Source: Diplonema japonicum
Taxonomy: Eukaryota > Protista > Euglenozoa: Diplonemea
Assembly: GCA_964019335.1 (NCBI GenBank)
Contig: OZ025653.1
Location: 558,001 to 622,000 of the forward strand
DNA: 64,000 nucleotides
Direction: 5' to 3'
Both the position numbers and the translations under genes were made by a program. Positions 6,671 to 16,989 of this stretch are shown here, one piece after another; positions within the stretch are counted from its first letter, which is position 1, and the number at the start of each line of letters is the position of its first letter. Under the pieces are notes generated by a model. It saw only the letters and a program-made list of their open reading frames with translations, made no database searches and was not told where the DNA came from.

Positions 6671-7219
6671 CTACACCACATAATCAACTTTGATGCTGGA
6701 GAACGGCTCTCGACACATAGGACATAATTTTTGCTTAAGAAGGTTGGCGCAGCACGGGTGGAACGCGTGCCTGCACACTTGATGCCCTGTGGAATCTCGG
6801 AATTGAGTCACTTCCACTTCCATCATATCCAGGCAAATGGCACACTCCATATCTATTGGCGTATCTGATTCGGTGGAAGAAGTGCGTTTCTTGCGATGCT
6901 TTTTGACTTTATTTGCTTTTTCAAAAATGTTTAGCTCCATTATTCTCTCATAGCTGGTGCCTAGGAGGTAAGGGGGGGCGGAAGAGCTTGTCTTCTCCCA
7001 CCTGCACCAGCAGAGTTCGCACACCCGTTTTTCTTTAATTTCGTACCCTTCCTCCCATTCTCTTCCTTCGGCCACAACAGGGCAACGCTTCGTGCTGCAG
7101 CCATCGCAGACCACCCTGCCACACCCCCGGCAGTGTGACTTATCCCACCACTCGCCAACATTTTTTCCACAGACCTCACATTCATCCCCATCTCTCCAAA
7201 ACTCACGGCCTCGGAACAT
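6671..7219 (-). CDS. FYVE + RING finger protein
   Basis: WRD..CEVC, HCRGCGRVVCDGC and RVCELC (FYVE); CAIC...CRHAFHPCC...CPMCR (RING). Start taken at MFRGREFW. Confidence 0.85.
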   Translation of the reverse strand: MFRGREFWRDGDECEVCGKNVGEWWDKSHCRGCGRVVCDGCSTKRCPVVAEGREWEEGYEIKEKRVCELCWCRWEKTSSSAPPYLLGTSYERIMELNIFEKANKVKKHRKKRTSSTESDTPIDMECAICLDMMEVEVTQFRDSTGHQVCRHAFHPCCANLLKQKLCPMCREPFSSIKVDYVV

Positions 7220-8756
7220 TTTTTTTTTCCCCTCAAAAAACCTTTCAGTACATAAGTATAATTTATAAAATAAAAAAATATATAAAATAAAAAAAGAGAA
7301 GAAGATCGAGCTAGTACGTATGTATGTAGCACATACCAAACTAGAATGGGAAAGAAAAAAAAAAGAGGTAGAAATTAAAAAAAAAATTCTTTTTTATTTT
7401 TTTTGGTTCGCTTTGCATGACGTGAATAGGTAAGTTTAATGGGAAAATGCAGCGGGCGAACCAATCGAGGTAAAATAGGTAGAGAAAAAGCTAGGGGGAG
7501 GGGGAACTAATGTGTTTGTTAAAAAAAGAAAAGGGTTTGCAGGGGGGGAGGAAGAGGAACCCCCTCCCGTTTTTGTAATAATTTGACCAATAAATAATAT
7601 CTCTAAATTGTGTTTTTTTTTTGTCAGGTTTTACTTATTTTTACGAGAAAAAAAAAAAAAAAAAAAAAAAGAGACATTTAAGGGGACCTGCGGTATGTGA
7701 CAGGACGCCTGAAGAGTCTCAATCTATCTCTTGATCGAACCTTTCTGTTGTGGTGTGGCCTTCGGCCCCTCGTTCACCCTCCTCGGTACCTTAGGTATAA
7801 AACCCTCAACCGAGTTGGTAAGGACACAATAGTTGTACAAAAAAGAAAAAAAAGAAGGTGAAGAAGTGAGGTGAAGCCCTCGATCTTCTCCCTGAAAGTA
7901 TGCAACAAAATAACTTCTAAGACGTTAAAAAAAGGGCAACATGCTTGAAGTGTCTTTTTAAAATCTTTTTTCACAGGGGGGGGAAGGAAGGGAGGGAAGT
8001 AATCGAAGTTCTAAGAACGAACAGAATAGGAACTGGCCTTTGTTTGTACAGGTAAAAACCTGTAAAGTTAAAAGACTCGTTCTTGCAAAAAAAGGGGGTG
8101 TAATAATCACCAAAACAGTATTGGGGTTTTTTTTACTCATTTTTTTTTTGTTCTCCTCCTTATTGCCTACTATTCTTTTAAAATCTGAAAGGAAGCCTGC
8201 CTACAGACGAAGAGGGGGCAGCAAAAAGTTATGGGAAAGACGGGGGAAAAAAAAAATAATTGGAATTGGGAGGGCAAGGAGGGGGAGCAAAGCAGTTTCT
8301 GGGTCAATTTGTTCCTCCAAAAATGACAACAGAATATATGAGAGAAAATCAGCTAAATTAATTAACGAAAAAAAACTCAGGAATGAGCGAAAAGGGTGGG
8401 AAAGGAAAGAAGAAGAAGAAAAAAAATATATATGTATGAGTTTAAGGAGGCCGGTGTTGGCGGCGCCCTGAAAAAAAAAAGGGGGTGTCTTTGAAGGGAG
8501 CCTGCAGTACGCGACAGGATCGCCTAACAAAAAAAGAAAAGAGAAAAAAAAAAAAAAAAAGGAAGAAGGAAACCGTTTCGGTGAATGCAAAAAAGAAAAA
8601 AAGAAGAAGAAAAAAAAAAATATTTATGACTATATGTCTTTGTTATTCGCCTGGCATCTGGCACGGAGGCAGGTGATTCACCCCACTCTCCACCCGCTTT
8701 GGCAGTCTTTCACAAGTTTGCATATAGTTATAACATCATTTTCCCCCTTTTTTTCC

Positions 8757-9392
8757 CTACTCGTCAATGGAATAAGGTGCTTCAGTAAGCCAAGGGTTGG
8801 GAACCACCTTTGTGTAGGAGAATTCCTTTCTGCAAACTGGACAGGTCTTGTTAGACAGAAGATGCATGCACCCAGGGTGGAAGGAGTGCCTGCAAGTTCT
8901 TGCCGTGGGTGTGAAAAATTGGGTAATCTTCGCCTCCAAGGGAGAGAGGCACAAAGCACAGTCGGGGTCGTTTTGGATGCTGAAGAGGGTCACTTCAGCT
9001 GCAGAGTGAATCCAACGGGTTTCCCCCGTGTTTTTGTTATGTTCGTAGATTCGATTTTTGTCCTCGTCAAGGTAGCGCCTCCAGCCGTTCTTTTCCAGTT
9101 GGATGCCCAACTGTTCAATTTTGCATTGTTTTTTTCCGACCAGGAACTTTTCTTCAGGGCTGTCCAGCCAGTTTTCCATACACTTATCGCACACGGCTTT
9201 GTCCTTCACCTCGTAGTCCGGTTCATCCAGTCTCGTAACAGCCACGACCGGACATTTTACCGAGCAGCACTTACTGCAAAACACCTCCCCACATCTTCTG
9301 CAATTGTGCTTCCGCTGAAAAATCGAAAAATCGACCGCACACTTGCTGCACTCGTTACCCGTGACCCAGTGTTCTCTGCCCTTTTTAACCAT
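8757..9392 (-). CDS. FYVE + WW-like + RING finger protein, paralog of 6671-7219
   Basis: RKHNCRRCGEVFCSKC (FYVE); GWRRYLDEDKNRIYEHNKNTGETRW (WW-like); CALC...CRHSFHPGC...CPVCR (RING). Confidence 0.85.
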   Translation of the reverse strand: MVKKGREHWVTGNECSKCAVDFSIFQRKHNCRRCGEVFCSKCCSVKCPVVAVTRLDEPDYEVKDKAVCDKCMENWLDSPEEKFLVGKKQCKIEQLGIQLEKNGWRRYLDEDKNRIYEHNKNTGETRWIHSAAEVTLFSIQNDPDCALCLSPLEAKITQFFTPTARTCRHSFHPGCMHLLSNKTCPVCRKEFSYTKVVPNPWLTEAPYSIDE

Positions 9393-10049: not shown

Positions 10050-10371
10050 TTTTTGTCAACCCCAGAAAAGAGTATATAACTACTGTGATAAAAAAAAAAA
10101 AAAACACGAAGCTATACGAAAGGAAAGAAGAAGGAGAGAGAACGAAAAAGAGAAAAAAGAAATGGCTCTGCTTTCTCCCCAGAAATAAAGGAGCAACTTC
10201 CATCAGTTTGTTTGCTAGAAGAAAAAAAAAAAGGGTGTACGTGGAGGGGGTGGGGCTGATGGAATCATTTCTCTTCTACATTCATTCTCCTCCTTCTTCT
10301 TCTTTTTTTTTCTCTTCCCCCTTTCTACTATGATTTGACGGGAAATAAACAAAAAAACAAAACAAAAAAAA

Positions 10372-10409
<38 letters not shown>

Positions 10410-10411
<2 letters not shown>

Positions 10412-13400
10412 AGTTTTCAACGTCCATCTTTTCAGCAGTGGAATCTTCTTTCGGTGCAATTTTTGGGATTTTCTGCTTTGGCTCATAAGGACACGATGCA
10501 GGGGGGGTGACCTTGTCAGGCAACGTTCCAACGAGATCGGAGCTGTGGTAGGTGGTGAGGTTGGCGACTGCCTCATCAAGGGCGGTCTGCATGCCAGCAG
10601 CGTAAAGCTTACCGAGGATCCGTTCCACATCTGTTTCCTTGACGTGAAGAACAGGGTTTGCCGGTTTGAAGACTGTGCAACAGTCAGCCGTTCCGTACAT
10701 TTTGGTGATGTCAAATATGTTGAGATCGTAACAAAGTTTAATAATCTCCTCCTTCGCAAACGTGACGAGTGGCCTTGCAACAAACATGTCGCTGTATTTG
10801 TCAAGAACAGACATGTTGCACAAAGTCTGCGATGCGACCTGTCCTATGTTGTCCCCCGTGCACAGTGCTTTGTAGTAGTTCGCCTCTGCCACTACCTTAG
10901 CCAGTCTGAACATGAACACCCTGTACAGAACAGTTCTGTAAGATGCGGGCACGTCGGGGGTCTCGGCGATAAGCTCTTGGATCTTCGAAAACCTTACCAC
11001 GAACAGCGGGCCGCCCTCCCCTTGGTGTCTGTTAAGAACTTCTTGCAGTTTTCTGATTTTCAAAACAACTTCCTTCCCGACGTATGGGTACCCGTCAAAG
11101 TGAATAAACCCAACCCTGCACCCTCTCTTGATCACCTTGTGACATGCTACAGGTGAGTCATGCCCACCCGACAACAAGCACAACACACGCCCGTCTGCAT
11201 CCACACCGTCAGGCAGCCCACCGCCGCACTTTTCCACATTTTTATGCGTGAACACCATTGCGACGTCCGGTCTTACGCGTGCCTTTTATTATTATTATTA
11301 TTATTATTTTTTTTTTTTTGACAGCATACCTCGATCAGAATTTGCGGTTTCACCAAGTTCACCTTCAACGGAGGTGACAACTCCGCCGCCTGCGACGATA
11401 GGTACTGTTAAAGAAAAAAAAAAATTTATATATTGTACGAAGATATGCCATACCACGTTTGCCCCCAGGTTCCTGTTGATGTCATTGGATTCCATGGGGA
11501 AGCGCTTGTCGGCCCTCCTCGAGGTCACGCCGAAGGTGATGTTTGTCGCGGTGGGGTCGAGTTTCTGGATCTGCTCGTAGGCACAGTGGAATGTTTCAAA
11601 GGCAGACTTCCGGATGGCCTTCCAGTCCGGCTTAGATATTTTGACTGCGGCAACCGTGTTAATGCCCGACACCTCCTTCAGAAGGGGCTTGATTCTGTCT
11701 TCAAACTCCTGTAGTGTGTTAAACCAAAAACAAAAACAAAAAACTGCGACATACCGTTGAGGTAATCTGCCTGCTGGGGGGAGGGATGGTTGCGACAGAC
11801 GTGCTCTGCGAGAGGCCGCCTTTAGGGATGTTCTCAGGTGCGATGTGGAAGAGCAGCACGTACCCAGCTTGCGGGTGTCCTTTTGGAACCCACAAAGACA
11901 GCTCCTTGGCAACCTCGTCAGACGCCATCTTCTTCCTGATGTTCGACATCATTTGCTTCTCAAAAGTTTTCCTGTTCGAGCCCTTCAACACAAGCTCCCC
12001 CAAGGTGATCATCACGGCATCGAACCCATAGCTCGACTGCTTGCATGATTTGAAGATCTCTGCGATCTCCTCGTCAGACTCAAACACAATGGGTTCTATG
12101 GGCACTTGTTCCTTCTTTTCCTTCGGCTTCTTCTTCATGCGGTCCCATCTGTTGGGTTTTTTGCTTTTCTTCTCCATGTTCGGCGCGGTGCTGTCTTTTG
12201 TTTTGTTCTTGTCGTCTTTGAAGCTTCTCTTGTTGAGCTCGCGTGCTTGGTTAGGTTGGAACTTAGACAGTGTGGTCCGCATGGCGTCCAACAGTTTCGC
12301 GGTGTCTGCATCTGTGATGTCGGAGCTGAACGAGAAGCGAACGGCACTGAAATAGTCCTCACCGTTGACACGGAGGGACGAGATAACTTTGCTCGGCTTG
12401 TCGTTTTGCGACGAGCAAGCGGCACCACTAGAGATGGACAGCCCCAGGTCGGACAACATTGACACGAAGTGTCTACCCTGCATCCCTGGGAACAAGTACG
12501 TTAGGATTCCAGGCGCGCCCAAAGGAGGAGGCTGCGAGAGTTCCTTGTAGGTGACATTGAGCTCTTCGCAGATGGTGGCGATGCCCGATGTCACTTGTTT
12601 GCGGATGGCAAGGCACGTCTGCTCATTGTGCTTCATCTTTTCAATCGACAGCTTCGTCGCAACAAGCCCTGCGATGTACGCCGCAACGTCCTTTGTCGCC
12701 TTGTACGTGTCGGGGAGCAGCCCGCGACGCGTGGCAACAACAGCACCGCACCTCTTGGGACCGCTTACCTTGTGGAAGGACAACGAGACAAGCGAGGCTT
12801 TCCATTTAGCCATCTCAAGAGGGATCTTACCGAGAGTTTGGATACAATCAACGTGGAAAAGTGCCTGCGGTGCGAGCTCTTGGATCAACACACCGATTTT
12901 CTGAAGCGGCTGGATCACACCTATTTCATTATTGGCATGGTGGGTGGAGACGAATGCGACACGCTCGCCGAAAGTGGAAAGCTTCTCTTTAAGAATGGTG
13001 AGATTGTAGACACCGGTATTGCGGTCGACAGGGATGATCTCGGTGGTGAAGCCCTTGTGTTCCATGGCGGCAGCCTTGTCAAGGAGGGAAGGGTGCTCGA
13101 TCTCACCTATAAGAAGGACATCACGTTGCAGTCCACCACCAAGGCTCTTGGGGCGAACGGGGAGTACAGCGTGCATCACGAACTCGTTGGCGGCAGCACC
13201 ACCATCGACGAAAACACATTTCTCGTAACCTTGTTCCTCCGGGTTACATAGTGCAACCACCTCGGAACGAGCCATTTCTTCAATAGCATTGGCGGCTTGG
13301 CCTTCTGCGTGCATTGAATTAGAATTTGCTGTTAGCAACATGTTCCCCACCGCCTGTGCCGCGATCGCCTCTGCTGACATTGCTGTTGACGCTGCTTGGT

Positions 13401-13512
13401 CGAAGCTCGCAGGCCGTGCGTTTTTCTTCTTCTCATGCTGAGCCGTTATAATGTTATATGTGGCATCTATCAGCTCTCCCTCGTCAGGGAAAAGCCTCTT
13501 CAGGTGATCCAT
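10410..13512 (-). CDS. thiI: Cysteine desulfurase (NifS/IscS type)-ThiI fusion; exons 13512-11755, 11708-11454, 11404-11330, 11282-10410; about 986 aa
   Basis: Desulfurase: ANNEIGVIQP, HVDCIQ, SFHKVSGPK (PLP lysine), SSGAACSS (catalytic Cys). ThiI: GELVLKGSNRKTFE, THUMP TFGVTSRRADKRFPMES and KVNLVKP, PP-loop LSGGHDSPVA, TGDNIGQVASQTL, RPL, DCC. Three phase-0 GTATG..AG introns (46, 49, 47 nt) join all parts in frame. Confidence 0.92.
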
Positions 13513-14206
13513 TTTGAAATTCCCTTGGCTCCTGCTTGTGATGGTAATGAGGTTTAGTATAAAAAAAAAGAAAAGAAATTCGCTGTGGGGGAAAGGGAGG
13601 GGAAGGTGAGCAGTTTTTTTTTTAAGAAAACACCAGATCTGCTTGTTTTTTTTGGGGGGGGGGGAACATGTAAAAAAAAAAAAAAGAAAACGACATACGA
13701 TGAAGCGGGGTTTTTAAAAAAAGCTTTTTTTTCTTCTTCTTCCCGATTCCATTTTTAAGTTGTGTTACTCATTCTGGGAGGGGATCTAATGGGGGGGGTT
13801 TTTTTTCTTCTTTTTTCTCTTTCTCGTTCTGTCTGTAAAAAAAATAAGGGGCGGGAAAAAAAAAAAGAAAAAAAAAAAGTACTAACATCTCGAAAATAAA
13901 CCGTAGTCCCTCGAAGTTCCATCCCGACCCATGACGGGCATTCGGGGAGAAGGGAAGAAGAAAAAAAAATAGAGACAAAAAAAAAGGTAATTCCAACACT
14001 TTCTCTTTTCCCACCGCCATGCTTCGTCCGTCATAACTATGATTTCTTCTTTCCCCTTTTTTTTTCTCATGTCTGTGTCAATGCTTCAATCAAAACAAAA
14101 TAAAAGAGATTAGGAGAAATTTTTTACTATTTTTTTTTTTTTGTTTTGAATTGAAAAAAAAAAAAAAGAACCAAAACGGAAAAAAAAAAAAAAAAAAAAA
14201 TTGTCC

Positions 14207-16204
14207 TCACGTACCACCCCGCACGGAGCGTTTTCCCCTCATAGGCTGCACAATTGCATCAATTGAACTTGAAGTACGGGAAATTATGTAACACCCATCT
14301 TCCAATCGTTCAAATGTGCATCCTTTGAAAATGTGAGTACTGCCCAACCGGAGGTGTGCAAATTGAGGCACTTTGAATGCGTCCTTCTCGTCCTCCAATT
14401 GCCCTCTCAGTTGCGCCGCGATCTTGTAAAGGGCGTGAATCTGCACAGCAAAAAGCCTCACAGGCAGCCCACATGAAGTTGTTAAAACTTCTTCACCAAC
14501 AAGCCCCATCACGTACTTGAAATTCAAGATAAGCTGTGTCATGGAATGTCTGTCCTGAGCAACAACACGAGCCCACACTTTTTCAGCGGAAAGTGAGTTA
14601 GTCAATGGGATCTTAAGCAATCCGTAGGAAGAGAAGATTTTTGCAGTGTTTGTTCTAGGGGCCTCAAGATGAAGAGACAGTTTGGAACCTTTCACTGCGC
14701 CGAAGCAATCTTGCAATGTGAACACGACACCTAACAGAACGTTGTTGCAGCGGTACATCTCGTTCGAGTCGAGGAACGCATCGCAGACCCCCTTCCAGAC
14801 CTCAGTGCTGTCCTTGGCATCGTTAAGAAGACATACTATCTCATCCAGGTAGCTCTTGGCTTCCTCTAACCCCTCCTTCCGTCCATCGCAAGACCATTTC
14901 ATGATGTGTTCCAGCACTTCGGCCTCCCGAGAAGGCTCCGAAACCAGTATCGTCTTTGTTATAATCGCATAATAGAATTTTACTAGCAGTTTTGTCAGTG
15001 CTACGCCAGATGGATCGTCGTTGGAACGTAGCGATATCCTCGGAAGGGCGGAACCGCTTGTGTTTTTTATCTTCAGCAACGCGCCTTCGTTGATCTTCGA
15101 ATTTTGTTTGATCTGGTTCAGCCCCGAACTGGACTGTCTTTCCACCAACGAATTACACTGCCTCATCAACGCAGGACGCAGCAGATCCCATTCGCAAAAC
15201 CCGCTTTTAAGATGCTGCAGTATAACCGGTATCATCGGGGAGGCATCCAAAGGGAAGCTTGGATTGCTAAGAAGCTCTAGAGAGGTGTTTAGAATAGTTT
15301 TTTGAGGGTTGAGTATGGTGAAGATTGGGATGGGAATACCGCGAAGCGCGGGTTCGGTCCCAGCAAGGAAAGGAGGGAGGCCGGTTTTAGCGGTGAGCAA
15401 AATTATGGAGGAACGCGTCTCACGGCATATAGAATCGATGAAGTTTTTCAATTTTTTTTTCGACTTCCCATCTGGACAGAGCCGGGAGGATGTGGGTCGG
15501 AGCTGGAACATGGAGTACCCAGGTGGGATGTCGACAGTCTCCACACCAGCTTCAGGTGTCGTGCCTCCAAGTCGGACCCAAGAACTTCGTTTAGCATCGC
15601 GTCCGTACAAAAGCCAAGTGAGCCTGTCTGTTGTATTTTTTTTCTTGACTGTGAACTTTGCAGCCACCCCACGTGGGTTGATGGGTACCGGTTTCCCCAT
15701 TCTGTTTCGTTGCAGATCAATAACAGTGTTTTCAAAATGCGTTTCAGGATCGATTTCAGTTGTAACCAACGTTTCCGACAACTCGATTTCTTCGTCAGTC
15801 TTCGTGGAGAATCGGAGTTTTTCAATCTCAAATAAGTATGATGCGGGTTCTCGGACTTCTCCATCTGAAATGATGATTATGCCGGCCTCCCTGTGGAGCT
15901 GTTCGATTTTTTCAGGGATCGCAGATTCTTGGACGTATAGACCTCCGACTTTCTCTGCGATGAGGTTGGCAATGCCGTTTATCAACCTTCTTTTGATGGC
16001 CCGCACTACACAGCATTTTCCTGGGTAACGTACTTTTCCCCATCGTTTGATGTTCTCTAGTTCCAAGCATTTTTTCAACGCGGTGTTCTCGCACGCTCTC
16101 AGGCCTCGCAGAATGCAGTCCTGCGCCTCGCCTTTCGCTCCTTTGTAGCGTACGGTTTCCCAGTCGTGCCACCGTAACAATTTTTCACGGTTGTATTTCT
16201 TCAT
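14207..16204 (-). CDS. Hypothetical protein, about 665 aa, intronless
   Basis: Long ORF of normal composition, co-oriented with neighbours. Start taken at MKKYNREK. No recognised motif. Confidence 0.7.
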   Translation of the reverse strand: MKKYNREKLLRWHDWETVRYKGAKGEAQDCILRGLRACENTALKKCLELENIKRWGKVRYPGKCCVVRAIKRRLINGIANLIAEKVGGLYVQESAIPEKIEQLHREAGIIIISDGEVREPASYLFEIEKLRFSTKTDEEIELSETLVTTEIDPETHFENTVIDLQRNRMGKPVPINPRGVAAKFTVKKKNTTDRLTWLLYGRDAKRSSWVRLGGTTPEAGVETVDIPPGYSMFQLRPTSSRLCPDGKSKKKLKNFIDSICRETRSSIILLTAKTGLPPFLAGTEPALRGIPIPIFTILNPQKTILNTSLELLSNPSFPLDASPMIPVILQHLKSGFCEWDLLRPALMRQCNSLVERQSSSGLNQIKQNSKINEGALLKIKNTSGSALPRISLRSNDDPSGVALTKLLVKFYYAIITKTILVSEPSREAEVLEHIMKWSCDGRKEGLEEAKSYLDEIVCLLNDAKDSTEVWKGVCDAFLDSNEMYRCNNVLLGVVFTLQDCFGAVKGSKLSLHLEAPRTNTAKIFSSYGLLKIPLTNSLSAEKVWARVVAQDRHSMTQLILNFKYVMGLVGEEVLTTSCGLPVRLFAVQIHALYKIAAQLRGQLEDEKDAFKVPQFAHLRLGSTHIFKGCTFERLEDGCYIISRTSSSIDAIVQPMRGKRSVRGGT

Positions 16205-16989
16205 TTTCTTTTTCTCGACCCCCCCACCCGCCTCCCTCCTGCGCACAATTTTTTTTTTGTTGGGTAGATGATTTAAAAAAAAATGTCTAATTTTTTTTTC
16301 TTCTTCCAGGGGCAATAAAAAAAAAGAGTAATGAAAAAAAAAGTGGAGGGGGGGTGCATTTGTGGTCGGGGGAATGAAAAAAAATAGTTTTTAATTATTA
16401 AGTTGGGACAGTTGGAGGGGGGGGGGGGGGGAAATGAAGAAAGGAAAGAAGAAGAAAAAAAAAGAAGAGAAAAGGAACAAAAAGAAATAAAAAGAAATGT
16501 CAATTAAAAAGAAAAGATTACACCAATTGGTTCCTATCTCCTCGGTCCTTCTCCCCCCTTTTTTTCCTCTCCCTTTCCTCTCCTTTTTTTTCCTGCCTTG
16601 TTCAGGTATCAAAAAAAGTTTTCTGTTTATTTTTTTTCTCTCCTCCGAGAAGTTGGAAAGAAGGAAACCTCAGTTCCCCTCCCTTTTTTTTTTTGTAATT
16701 TTTTTTTCTTTTCTTCTTTTTTCTTCTTCTTCTGTTATCCTTAAAAAAAAAAAAAAAAAAAAAAATCCAAGGAAAAGCAAGCGGAAAAAGGAAAAAAAAG
16801 GGGGGGAAGGGAAGAATAAGAAAGTGTAGGTTTGTAAAAACAGAAGAATAAAATAAAATAAATAACACCCCCCCCTTTTTTTTCTCTCTTTTTCTTGGCA
16901 GCATCCCGTACACTGTATAAAGGGGCGGAACCACTTACCTAGGCAAGGGTGGATCAAATATTCTTTTTTTTTTCTTTTTTGTTTTTCAT

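Follow-up and report, generated by a model that had tools for sequence, protein, structure and literature searches.

4-Thiouridine at position 8 of tRNA (s4U8) counts as a mark of bacteria and archaea, acting as a near-ultraviolet sensor and as a signal of tRNA stability. In Bacillus, the desulfurase NifZ and the thiolase ThiI form a dedicated donor-acceptor pair for the synthesis of s4U (PMC5372739, PMC13066941), and homologues of ThiI have already been noted in a few protists, namely in two of 60 eukaryotes surveyed (PMC9825150, PMC5372739). Here we describe a gene in which both partners are joined in a single chain. It lies within a 64,000-nt stretch of the genome of Diplonema japonicum (GenBank assembly GCA_964019335.1, contig OZ025653.1, positions 558,001 to 622,000 of the forward strand), which in its entirety is referred to as the window. 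Diplonemids are among the most diverse marine heterotrophic protists. The encoded protein of 986 amino acids (aa) consists of a divergent NifZ-like, pyridoxal 5'-phosphate (PLP)-dependent cysteine desulfurase, a basic disordered linker and a complete Bacillus-type ThiI. Weighing the evidence presented below, we consider it fairly probable that this bifunctional product of a cis-spliced nuclear gene would be a self-contained tRNA U8 4-thiolase, in which sulfur is relayed from the desulfurase to the DCC motif of ThiI.

Results

One spliced mRNA spans both halves

When re-derived from the minus strand of positions 10300-13700, the gene runs from 13512 to 10410 and consists of four exons and three introns (Table 1), with 986 codons as the sum of its exons. 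All introns are in phase 0, since the length of each exon is a multiple of three. The length of intron 2 itself is not, which shifts the frame relative to the open reading frame (ORF) that reads through it, and the short exon 3 therefore lies in another frame than that mechanically derived ORF. Furthermore, the uninterrupted sequence of Diplonema ambulator (transcript P0001) aligns without gaps across all three exon junctions. In intron 3 a poly(A)/(AAT)n run is found right before the 3' AG, in place of a polypyrimidine tract, and the 3' end of intron 1 is an AC-rich stretch.

Eight public sequencing runs contain this stretch, and four were aligned to the window. Record 20 of run X8 is a 2966-nt contig that is 100% identical to the window and covers nearly the whole coding sequence. 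Its aligned blocks (13532-11754, 11707-11454, 11404-11329 and 11277-10425) leave out exactly the three introns. Run X7 contains the unspliced genomic form of the locus. Runs X1 and X2, which stem from organisms 95-99% identical to the window, agree in the joints of all three introns. The third joint was not tabulated, positions 11278-11326 being masked as a repeat; both X8 record 20 and X2 record 7 have only four letters between 11329 and 11277, as the model predicts. ThiI is a single locus in the 62.5-Mb assembly, and the intron-less contig is therefore cDNA and not a retrocopy. The desulfurase–ThiI fusion is transcribed and cis-spliced as one mRNA from a single-copy gene in the nuclear genome of the diplonemid. 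Just upstream of 13532 an AG follows a polypyrimidine tract, and this is likely to be the spliced-leader acceptor.

These results bear out the gene structure of the original prediction, made from the letters alone, in which three phase-0 GTATG..AG introns were removed to give a protein of about 986 aa, with the desulfurase and the N-terminus of ThiI in one uninterrupted exon: Pfam finds Aminotran_5 and ThiI_fer both in exon 1. The prediction would have been undermined by separate mRNAs for the two halves, an objection that the single X8 contig removes. A comparison of the window with its relatives in X1 and X2 yielded 40 listed differences, 35 of them synonymous and five non-synonymous, and synonymous changes predominate in the desulfurase half as well. 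Judging from these substitutions, the fusion gene is under purifying selection.

Table 1. Features of the desulfurase–ThiI fusion gene, in window coordinates.
Feature	Position	Strand	Description
5' untranslated stretch	13513..13532	-	RNA contig record 20 of run X8 starts at 13532
Exon 1	13512-11755	-	586 codons; aa 1-36 helical N-terminal extension; aa 37-425 class-I cysteine desulfurase (assigned from sequence and fold); aa 426-497 basic disordered linker; aa 498-586 start of ThiI ferredoxin-like domain
PLP-binding lysine K248 (HK motif)	12769..12771	-	invariant in alignment A2
Persulfide-forming catalytic cysteine C366 (SSGAAC loop)	12415..12417	-	invariant in A2; loop kept in all diplonemid-clade proteins
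Lys/Arg-rich linker between desulfurase and ThiI	12022..12237	-	72 aa, 20 K+R, 13 D+E; low predicted local distance difference test (pLDDT) score
Intron 1	11754-11709	-	46 nt, GTATGT...ACAG, phase 0; joint present in runs X8 and X1
Exon 2	11708-11454	-	85 codons; end of ferredoxin-like domain and first part of THUMP
Intron 2	11453-11405	-	49 nt, GTATGG...ACAG, phase 0; joint present in runs X8 and X2
Exon 3	11404-11330	-	25 codons; end of THUMP; gap-free alignment to D. ambulator product P0001
Intron 3	11329-11283	-	47 nt, GTATGC...AAAG, phase 0
Exon 4	11282-10410	-	290 codons and TGA; ThiI PP-loop ATP-pyrophosphatase domain and C-terminal tail of about 60 aa
PP-loop SGGHDS, ATP-binding/adenylation site	11154..11171	-	S38, G39, G40, D42 and S43 (exon 4) invariant in alignment A1
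GQVASQT	10824..10844	-	invariant in A1
DCC motif	10677..10685	-	D200, C201 and C202 (exon 4) invariant in A1; found in all 20 fused proteins
Tail cysteine C264 (exon 4), CP[YFC] motif	10491..10493	-	in the window protein, P0001, P0002, P0403, P0113 and P0117; absent in Artemidia P0114 and in P0119

The desulfurase half retains its catalytic residues

Profile searches and fold modelling were carried out exon by exon. In exon 1, Pfam detects Aminotran_5 (PF00266) at 5e-30, and desulfurases of the PDB match at an E-value of 3e-31. Within A2, a desulfurase alignment of 40 sequences, no variation is seen at H140 (the stacking histidine), D222, K248, T273 and C366, and next to none at the substrate arginine R392. 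The AlphaFold (AF2) model of the exon 1 product has a mean pLDDT of 89.6, and Foldseek superposes it on IscS, NFS1 and NifS with a TMt of 0.82-0.89 at 2.2-2.8 A. Lower confidence is seen at the Cys loop, which is expected for class-I enzymes, while the linker is disordered at 440-480, with a pLDDT below 60. With its PLP fold, PLP lysine, stacking histidine, aspartate, substrate arginine and flexible-loop cysteine, this half belongs by sequence and fold to the class-I cysteine desulfurases.

Two features of this half stand out. After the PLP lysine the protein reads LLPDTYKATKDV, as opposed to the longer GG(T/G)QERGxR(A/S)GTENV of solved desulfurases. The terminal threonine of this loop (T273) is retained despite the shortening, and the deletion is common to the whole diplonemid clade and to that of P0160. 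Secondly, the first 32 residues are modelled as helices with a pLDDT of 94-98, and the N-terminus is conserved among diplonemids. Because of this conservation and these confident helices, the N-terminus is not a cleavable presequence, and a mitochondrial presequence was ruled out on the same grounds. Basic linkers are not limited to D. japonicum, as they are present too in P0002, P0113, P0117, P0125 and P0222. According to the original prediction, the Lys-rich linker may act as a nuclear localisation signal.

The ThiI half is complete and of the type lacking a rhodanese domain

ThiI_fer is detected by Pfam in exon 1 (3e-8, 34.4 bits, above its cut-off) and ThiI (PF02568) in exon 4 (4e-52, 177 bits). 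The NCBIfam profile TIGR00342 matches collinearly, with positions 2-39 in exon 1, 56-127 in exon 2 (3e-6) and 157-365 in exon 4, leaving 128-156 for exon 3; taken exon by exon, it scores 20, 26.6 and 176.4 bits, against an equivalog cut-off of 264.5 bits that applies to the whole protein. A ferredoxin-like domain and THUMP thus precede a PP-loop domain with the SGGxDS motif. The solved structures nearest to exon 4 are both rhodanese-less, namely ThiI of B. anthracis (2C5S, 4e-37) and of T. maritima (4KR6, 1e-32), and the DCC motif aligns to EDCC of the former and DSC of the latter. K177 of exon 4 is invariant in A1. The DCC motif contains the equivalent of Cys344 in E. coli and T. maritima ThiI, and the conserved lysine is that of E. 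coli K321 (equivalence to E. coli numbering after PMC9825150).

No rhodanese domain was found by Pfam at E <= 0.1, there being only a tail of about 60 aa after the PP-loop domain, and none of the four exons carries a CXXC motif. As such, the protein does not belong to the E. coli-type ThiI class, as it has no rhodanese domain, nor to the archaeal [4Fe-4S] ThiI/TtuI class, as it has no CXXC + C ligands. The ten cysteines of exon 4 include the adjacent C201 and C202. In the otherwise variable C-terminal tail, about 63 aa past the DCC motif, C264 is conserved in fusions of the Diplonema lineage (Table 1). One may speculate that it serves as an extra sulfur-relay or resolving cysteine, a stand-in for the missing rhodanese cysteine.

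For both halves the original prediction had read the motifs correctly. The HK lysine and SSGAAC loop are there, and alignment to solved desulfurases traces the missing GGGQE loop to a shortening by about nine residues; THUMP, SGGHDS, GQVASQT and DCC follow, with neither a rhodanese domain nor CXXC. Its remark that the N-terminus does not resemble a mitochondrial presequence agrees with the AF2 model and the comparison of diplonemids, which show this region of the enzyme to be both structured and conserved.

Distribution and origin of the fusion

With exon 4 as query, 1.84 billion representatives were searched exhaustively by HMMER; combined with word-based searches and Pfam/phmmer checks, this yielded 20 fused proteins in which Aminotran_5 is followed by ThiI. 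The closest relative is P0001, a Trinity transcript of D. ambulator, to which exon 1 is 65% and exon 4 is 75% identical. Further fused homologues are found in Diplonema papillatum (NCBI KAJ9461253.1 and KAJ9461252.1, annotated 'putative tRNA sulfurtransferase'), Artemidia motanka, Sulcionema specki, the heterolobosean Percolomonas sp. WS (MMETSP0759) and the bacterium Ca. Hydrogenisulfobacillus filiaventi (CAB1128945.1), plus a Bacillota metagenome-assembled genome. The fusion is retained in at least five diplonemid taxa. It is a family trait across diplonemids, Percolomonas and at least one bacterial lineage, and not, as the first look at this locus might have implied, peculiar to this gene.

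Trees of the desulfurase and ThiI halves, built separately as the original prediction had proposed, recovered the same groups. The diplonemids group with the EukProt protein P0119, which together with P0118 is sister to the diplonemid clade. A second group joins the Percolomonas proteins (P0125, P0222, P0263 and P0264) with P0265 and P0272, and a third, formed by P0160, P0332 and P0338, is sister to the diplonemid group in the desulfurase tree (99*). The bacterial fusion stands among Bacillota NifZ-like desulfurases. The Percolomonas group adjoins ThiI of Planctomycetota (P0129) as well as a thiI-adjacent desulfurase of that phylum (L036), which suggests that this clade had a separate, traceable bacterial source. 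Fungal and animal NFS1 are nested within an IscS clade (99*); every fused protein and almost every thiI-adjacent desulfurase is placed outside it, and the desulfurase half under study clusters with bacterial, NifZ-like desulfurases encoded next to thiI. Since it lies outside the IscS/NFS1 clade, it is not a duplicate of the mitochondrial enzyme of the host.

The 80 best bacterial and archaeal ThiI loci are 36-46% identical to the protein and come from many phyla, including Acidobacteriota, Nitrospirota, Bacillota and Myxococcota. At 17 of the 80 closest bacterial thiI loci a desulfurase lies immediately upstream on the same strand, an order that equals that of the fused domains. Among these 80 loci none can be named as donor lineage for the diplonemid clade, whose ThiI is long-branched, and the backbone of the ThiI tree is without resolution. 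An approximately unbiased test on 43 rows did not reject a single clade of diplonemid and Percolomonas ThiI halves (p 0.187), so that a single eukaryotic origin is neither shown nor excluded. Given that bacterial fusions exist and that no donor lineage emerged, the fusion may have preceded or followed entry into eukaryotes. This qualifies the proposal that a nifZ-thiI-type gene pair was transferred, fused and then gained introns. The domain order, the NifZ-like grouping and the introns agree with it; fusion after transfer goes beyond the evidence.

Chromosomal setting and a second fusion

Same-strand ORFs around the fusion gene are ordinary eukaryotic genes, with FYVE-RING, WD40 and SET domains. 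Just downstream, two adjacent paralogous ORFs on the minus strand (6674-7339 and 8760-9392) encode FYVE and RING fingers, the second also having a WW domain. Directly upstream, again on the minus strand, lies a 702-aa ORF (14210-16315) without a Pfam match at E <= 0.001. No tRNA genes were found in the 64-kb window.

Elsewhere in the genome, contig C36 carries on its plus strand (355770-358718) an unrelated fusion, one 982-aa open frame in which Aminotran_5 (aa 192-519, 2.9e-36) is combined with a TtcA-like PP-loop domain (ATP_bind_3, aa 730-900, 7.8e-17). Its desulfurase has no BLAST similarity to that of the window. About 1 kb downstream there is a further Aminotran_5 ORF (C36:359670-360650). 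The occurrence of two such genes hints that this lineage repeatedly resorts to fusing tRNA thiolases with their sulfur donor.

Discussion

How would a fused desulfurase–ThiI protein thiolate tRNA? We infer its substrate, product, sulfur route and location, and have modelled the steps on the characterised NifZ-ThiI and IscS-ThiI systems (PMC5372739, PMC9825150). The desulfurase would take sulfur off L-cysteine and form a persulfide on C366. By docking the acceptor end of the tRNA, THUMP and the ferredoxin-like domain would place U8 in the PP-loop site, where SGGHDS and ATP would adenylate its O4. The flexible Cys loop would then hand its persulfide sulfur to the DCC cysteine or cysteines, within the same polypeptide or within a dimer, and these would deliver it to the activated uridine, yielding 4-thiouridine. 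The probable site of action is the cytosol or the nucleus, since the N-terminus forms a structured portion of the desulfurase. In its wider form, our proposal is that diplonemids, and separately heteroloboseans such as Percolomonas, make tRNA 4-thiouridine with a single-chain enzyme that receives sulfur directly from the Cys loop, in Diplonema possibly aided by the tail cysteine; for this broader statement we find the arguments evenly balanced.

Several observations weigh against a self-contained U8 thiolase. First of all, there is no report of s4U from any eukaryote (PMC5372739, PMC7694415), and the mechanism of ThiI proteins that have neither a rhodanese domain nor CXXC+C is unsettled and has been flagged for investigation (PMC9825150). 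At the level of the protein, THUMP in exon 2 alone reaches 0.0015 and 19.4 bits, just below the Pfam cut-off of 20.6, because the domain is split across exons 2 and 3; the full-length homologues P0113 and P0117 exceed this cut-off with 25.7 and 39.1 bits, respectively. Lastly, desulfurase activity is not assured, as this half obtains an NCBIfam score of 167 bits against a cut-off of 304, and LLPDTYKAT, about nine residues shorter, stands in place of the canonical GGGQE(R)G(x)RSGT loop.

The first of these points could also mean that the enzyme is active on another target than U8 of cytosolic tRNA, be it another position, imported mitochondrial tRNAs, another class of RNA or a small-molecule or cofactor acceptor. 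In Thermoplasma, for instance, thiolation takes place at U9. The eukaryotic record being empty of s4U (PMC5372739), a different target would fit the long branch of the diplonemid ThiI clade and its low identity to any bacterial ThiI, and the second desulfurase-PP-loop fusion in the same genome points to unusual sulfur-transfer enzymology. However, the ferredoxin-like domain and THUMP, which in ThiI serve as the ruler from the acceptor end to U8, are kept and collinear, and the structured, conserved N-terminus does not resemble a presequence. A thiamine role of this fusion is not expected, as that function requires the rhodanese domain (PMC9825150) that is absent here. Taken together, another target seems unlikely to us.

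The shortened loop, partly deleted in the diplonemid and P0160 clades, and the low NCBIfam scores raise the question of whether the desulfurase half is a catalytically dead scaffold, with sulfur coming from the housekeeping NFS1 or another donor. Against this stand the PLP lysine, stacking histidine, aspartate, catalytic cysteine, substrate arginine and loop threonine, all of which are invariant or nearly so, a confident fold model that superposes on active desulfurases, and the predominance of synonymous changes in this half, which make a dead scaffold improbable. We give slightly less credence still to a ThiI that uses an iron-sulfur cluster in the manner of archaeal TtuI, where the fused desulfurase would serve cluster assembly or sulfide supply instead of a persulfide relay. 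The many cysteines of exon 4, with their C201/C202 pair and conserved tail cysteine, speak for it, as does the unsettled mechanism of this class of ThiI (PMC9825150); yet the CXXC+C motif is absent from all four exons, and enzymes of the Bacillus type are the nearest relatives. Leader trans-splicing of mRNAs takes place in diplonemids, which makes internal acceptor sites conceivable, but the idea that the fusion is an artefact of two genes with separate mRNAs, of bacterial contamination or of misassembly is hardly credible and was rejected, given the uninterrupted exon shared by both halves, the one spliced contig that spans them, the same fused ORF in independent transcriptomes of other genera, the GT-AG introns and the eukaryotic neighbours.

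A self-contained U8 thiolase therefore remains our preferred reading, and what is new about it needs to be defined with care. The components and their chemistry are known, and fused proteins have been deposited, those of D. papillatum with a generic annotation. We found no paper that combines ThiI with diplonemids or describes a desulfurase-ThiI fusion, and none of relevance on 4-thiouridine with Diplonema; as far as this literature goes, the single-chain eukaryotic architecture is undescribed. The initial impression of novelty thus holds for the published description and not for the proteins themselves. The fusion gene is indirect evidence for a modification of tRNA hitherto unreported from eukaryotes, in that a gene for the whole predicted s4U pathway is conserved, expressed and under selection in diplonemids. 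If true, this would be the first such pathway in eukaryotes, and it would mean that a ThiI without rhodanese domain or CXXC takes its sulfur directly from the Cys loop of a desulfurase, a route that reviews list as an unresolved mechanism. The question is directly testable in D. papillatum, which is culturable and has its orthologue deposited. Moreover, a covalently joined donor-acceptor pair is a handy model for studying sulfur supply to ThiI proteins that have neither a rhodanese domain nor an iron-sulfur motif.

How does the fused protein compare with the systems described so far? With E. coli IscS and ThiI it shares the adenylation chemistry of the PP-loop, the cysteine equivalent to Cys344 and a class-I desulfurase as predicted sulfur source. 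It differs in having neither the rhodanese domain nor the Cys456 persulfide carrier, and the persulfide-disulfide cycle between two ThiI cysteines, in the form that it takes in E. coli, can therefore not run here. The archaeal TtuI of Methanococcus maripaludis and Pyrococcus furiosus, which depends on a [4Fe-4S] cluster, has the same rhodanese-less architecture, whereas in the D. japonicum protein the CXXC+C ligands are absent and a desulfurase is fused. Archaea with TtuI are often without desulfurases.

The closest resemblance in layout is to NifZ and ThiI (2C5S) of Bacillus subtilis and B. anthracis. Both have the same three ThiI domains and the SGGxDS and DCCTVF motifs, and both do without rhodanese domain and CXXC. 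Furthermore, the bacterial desulfurase gene lies directly upstream on the same strand, in the order of the domains here, and the desulfurase half falls among thiI-adjacent desulfurases. In contrast to the Bacillus pair, the Diplonema protein is one polypeptide with a basic disordered linker, encoded by a eukaryotic nuclear gene with three introns; its desulfurase begins with 36 additional, helical residues and is shortened at the GGGQE..RSG loop, and its ThiI keeps the stated distance of 36-46% identity to any bacterial ThiI. The deposited fused homologues of D. papillatum, Percolomonas and Ca. Hydrogenisulfobacillus all have the same Aminotran_5-then-ThiI order. The Percolomonas-clade and bacterial fusions keep the canonical GGGQE loop and are placed elsewhere in both trees, whereas the diplonemid homologues resemble the protein described here in their deleted loop residues, extended N-terminus and linker.

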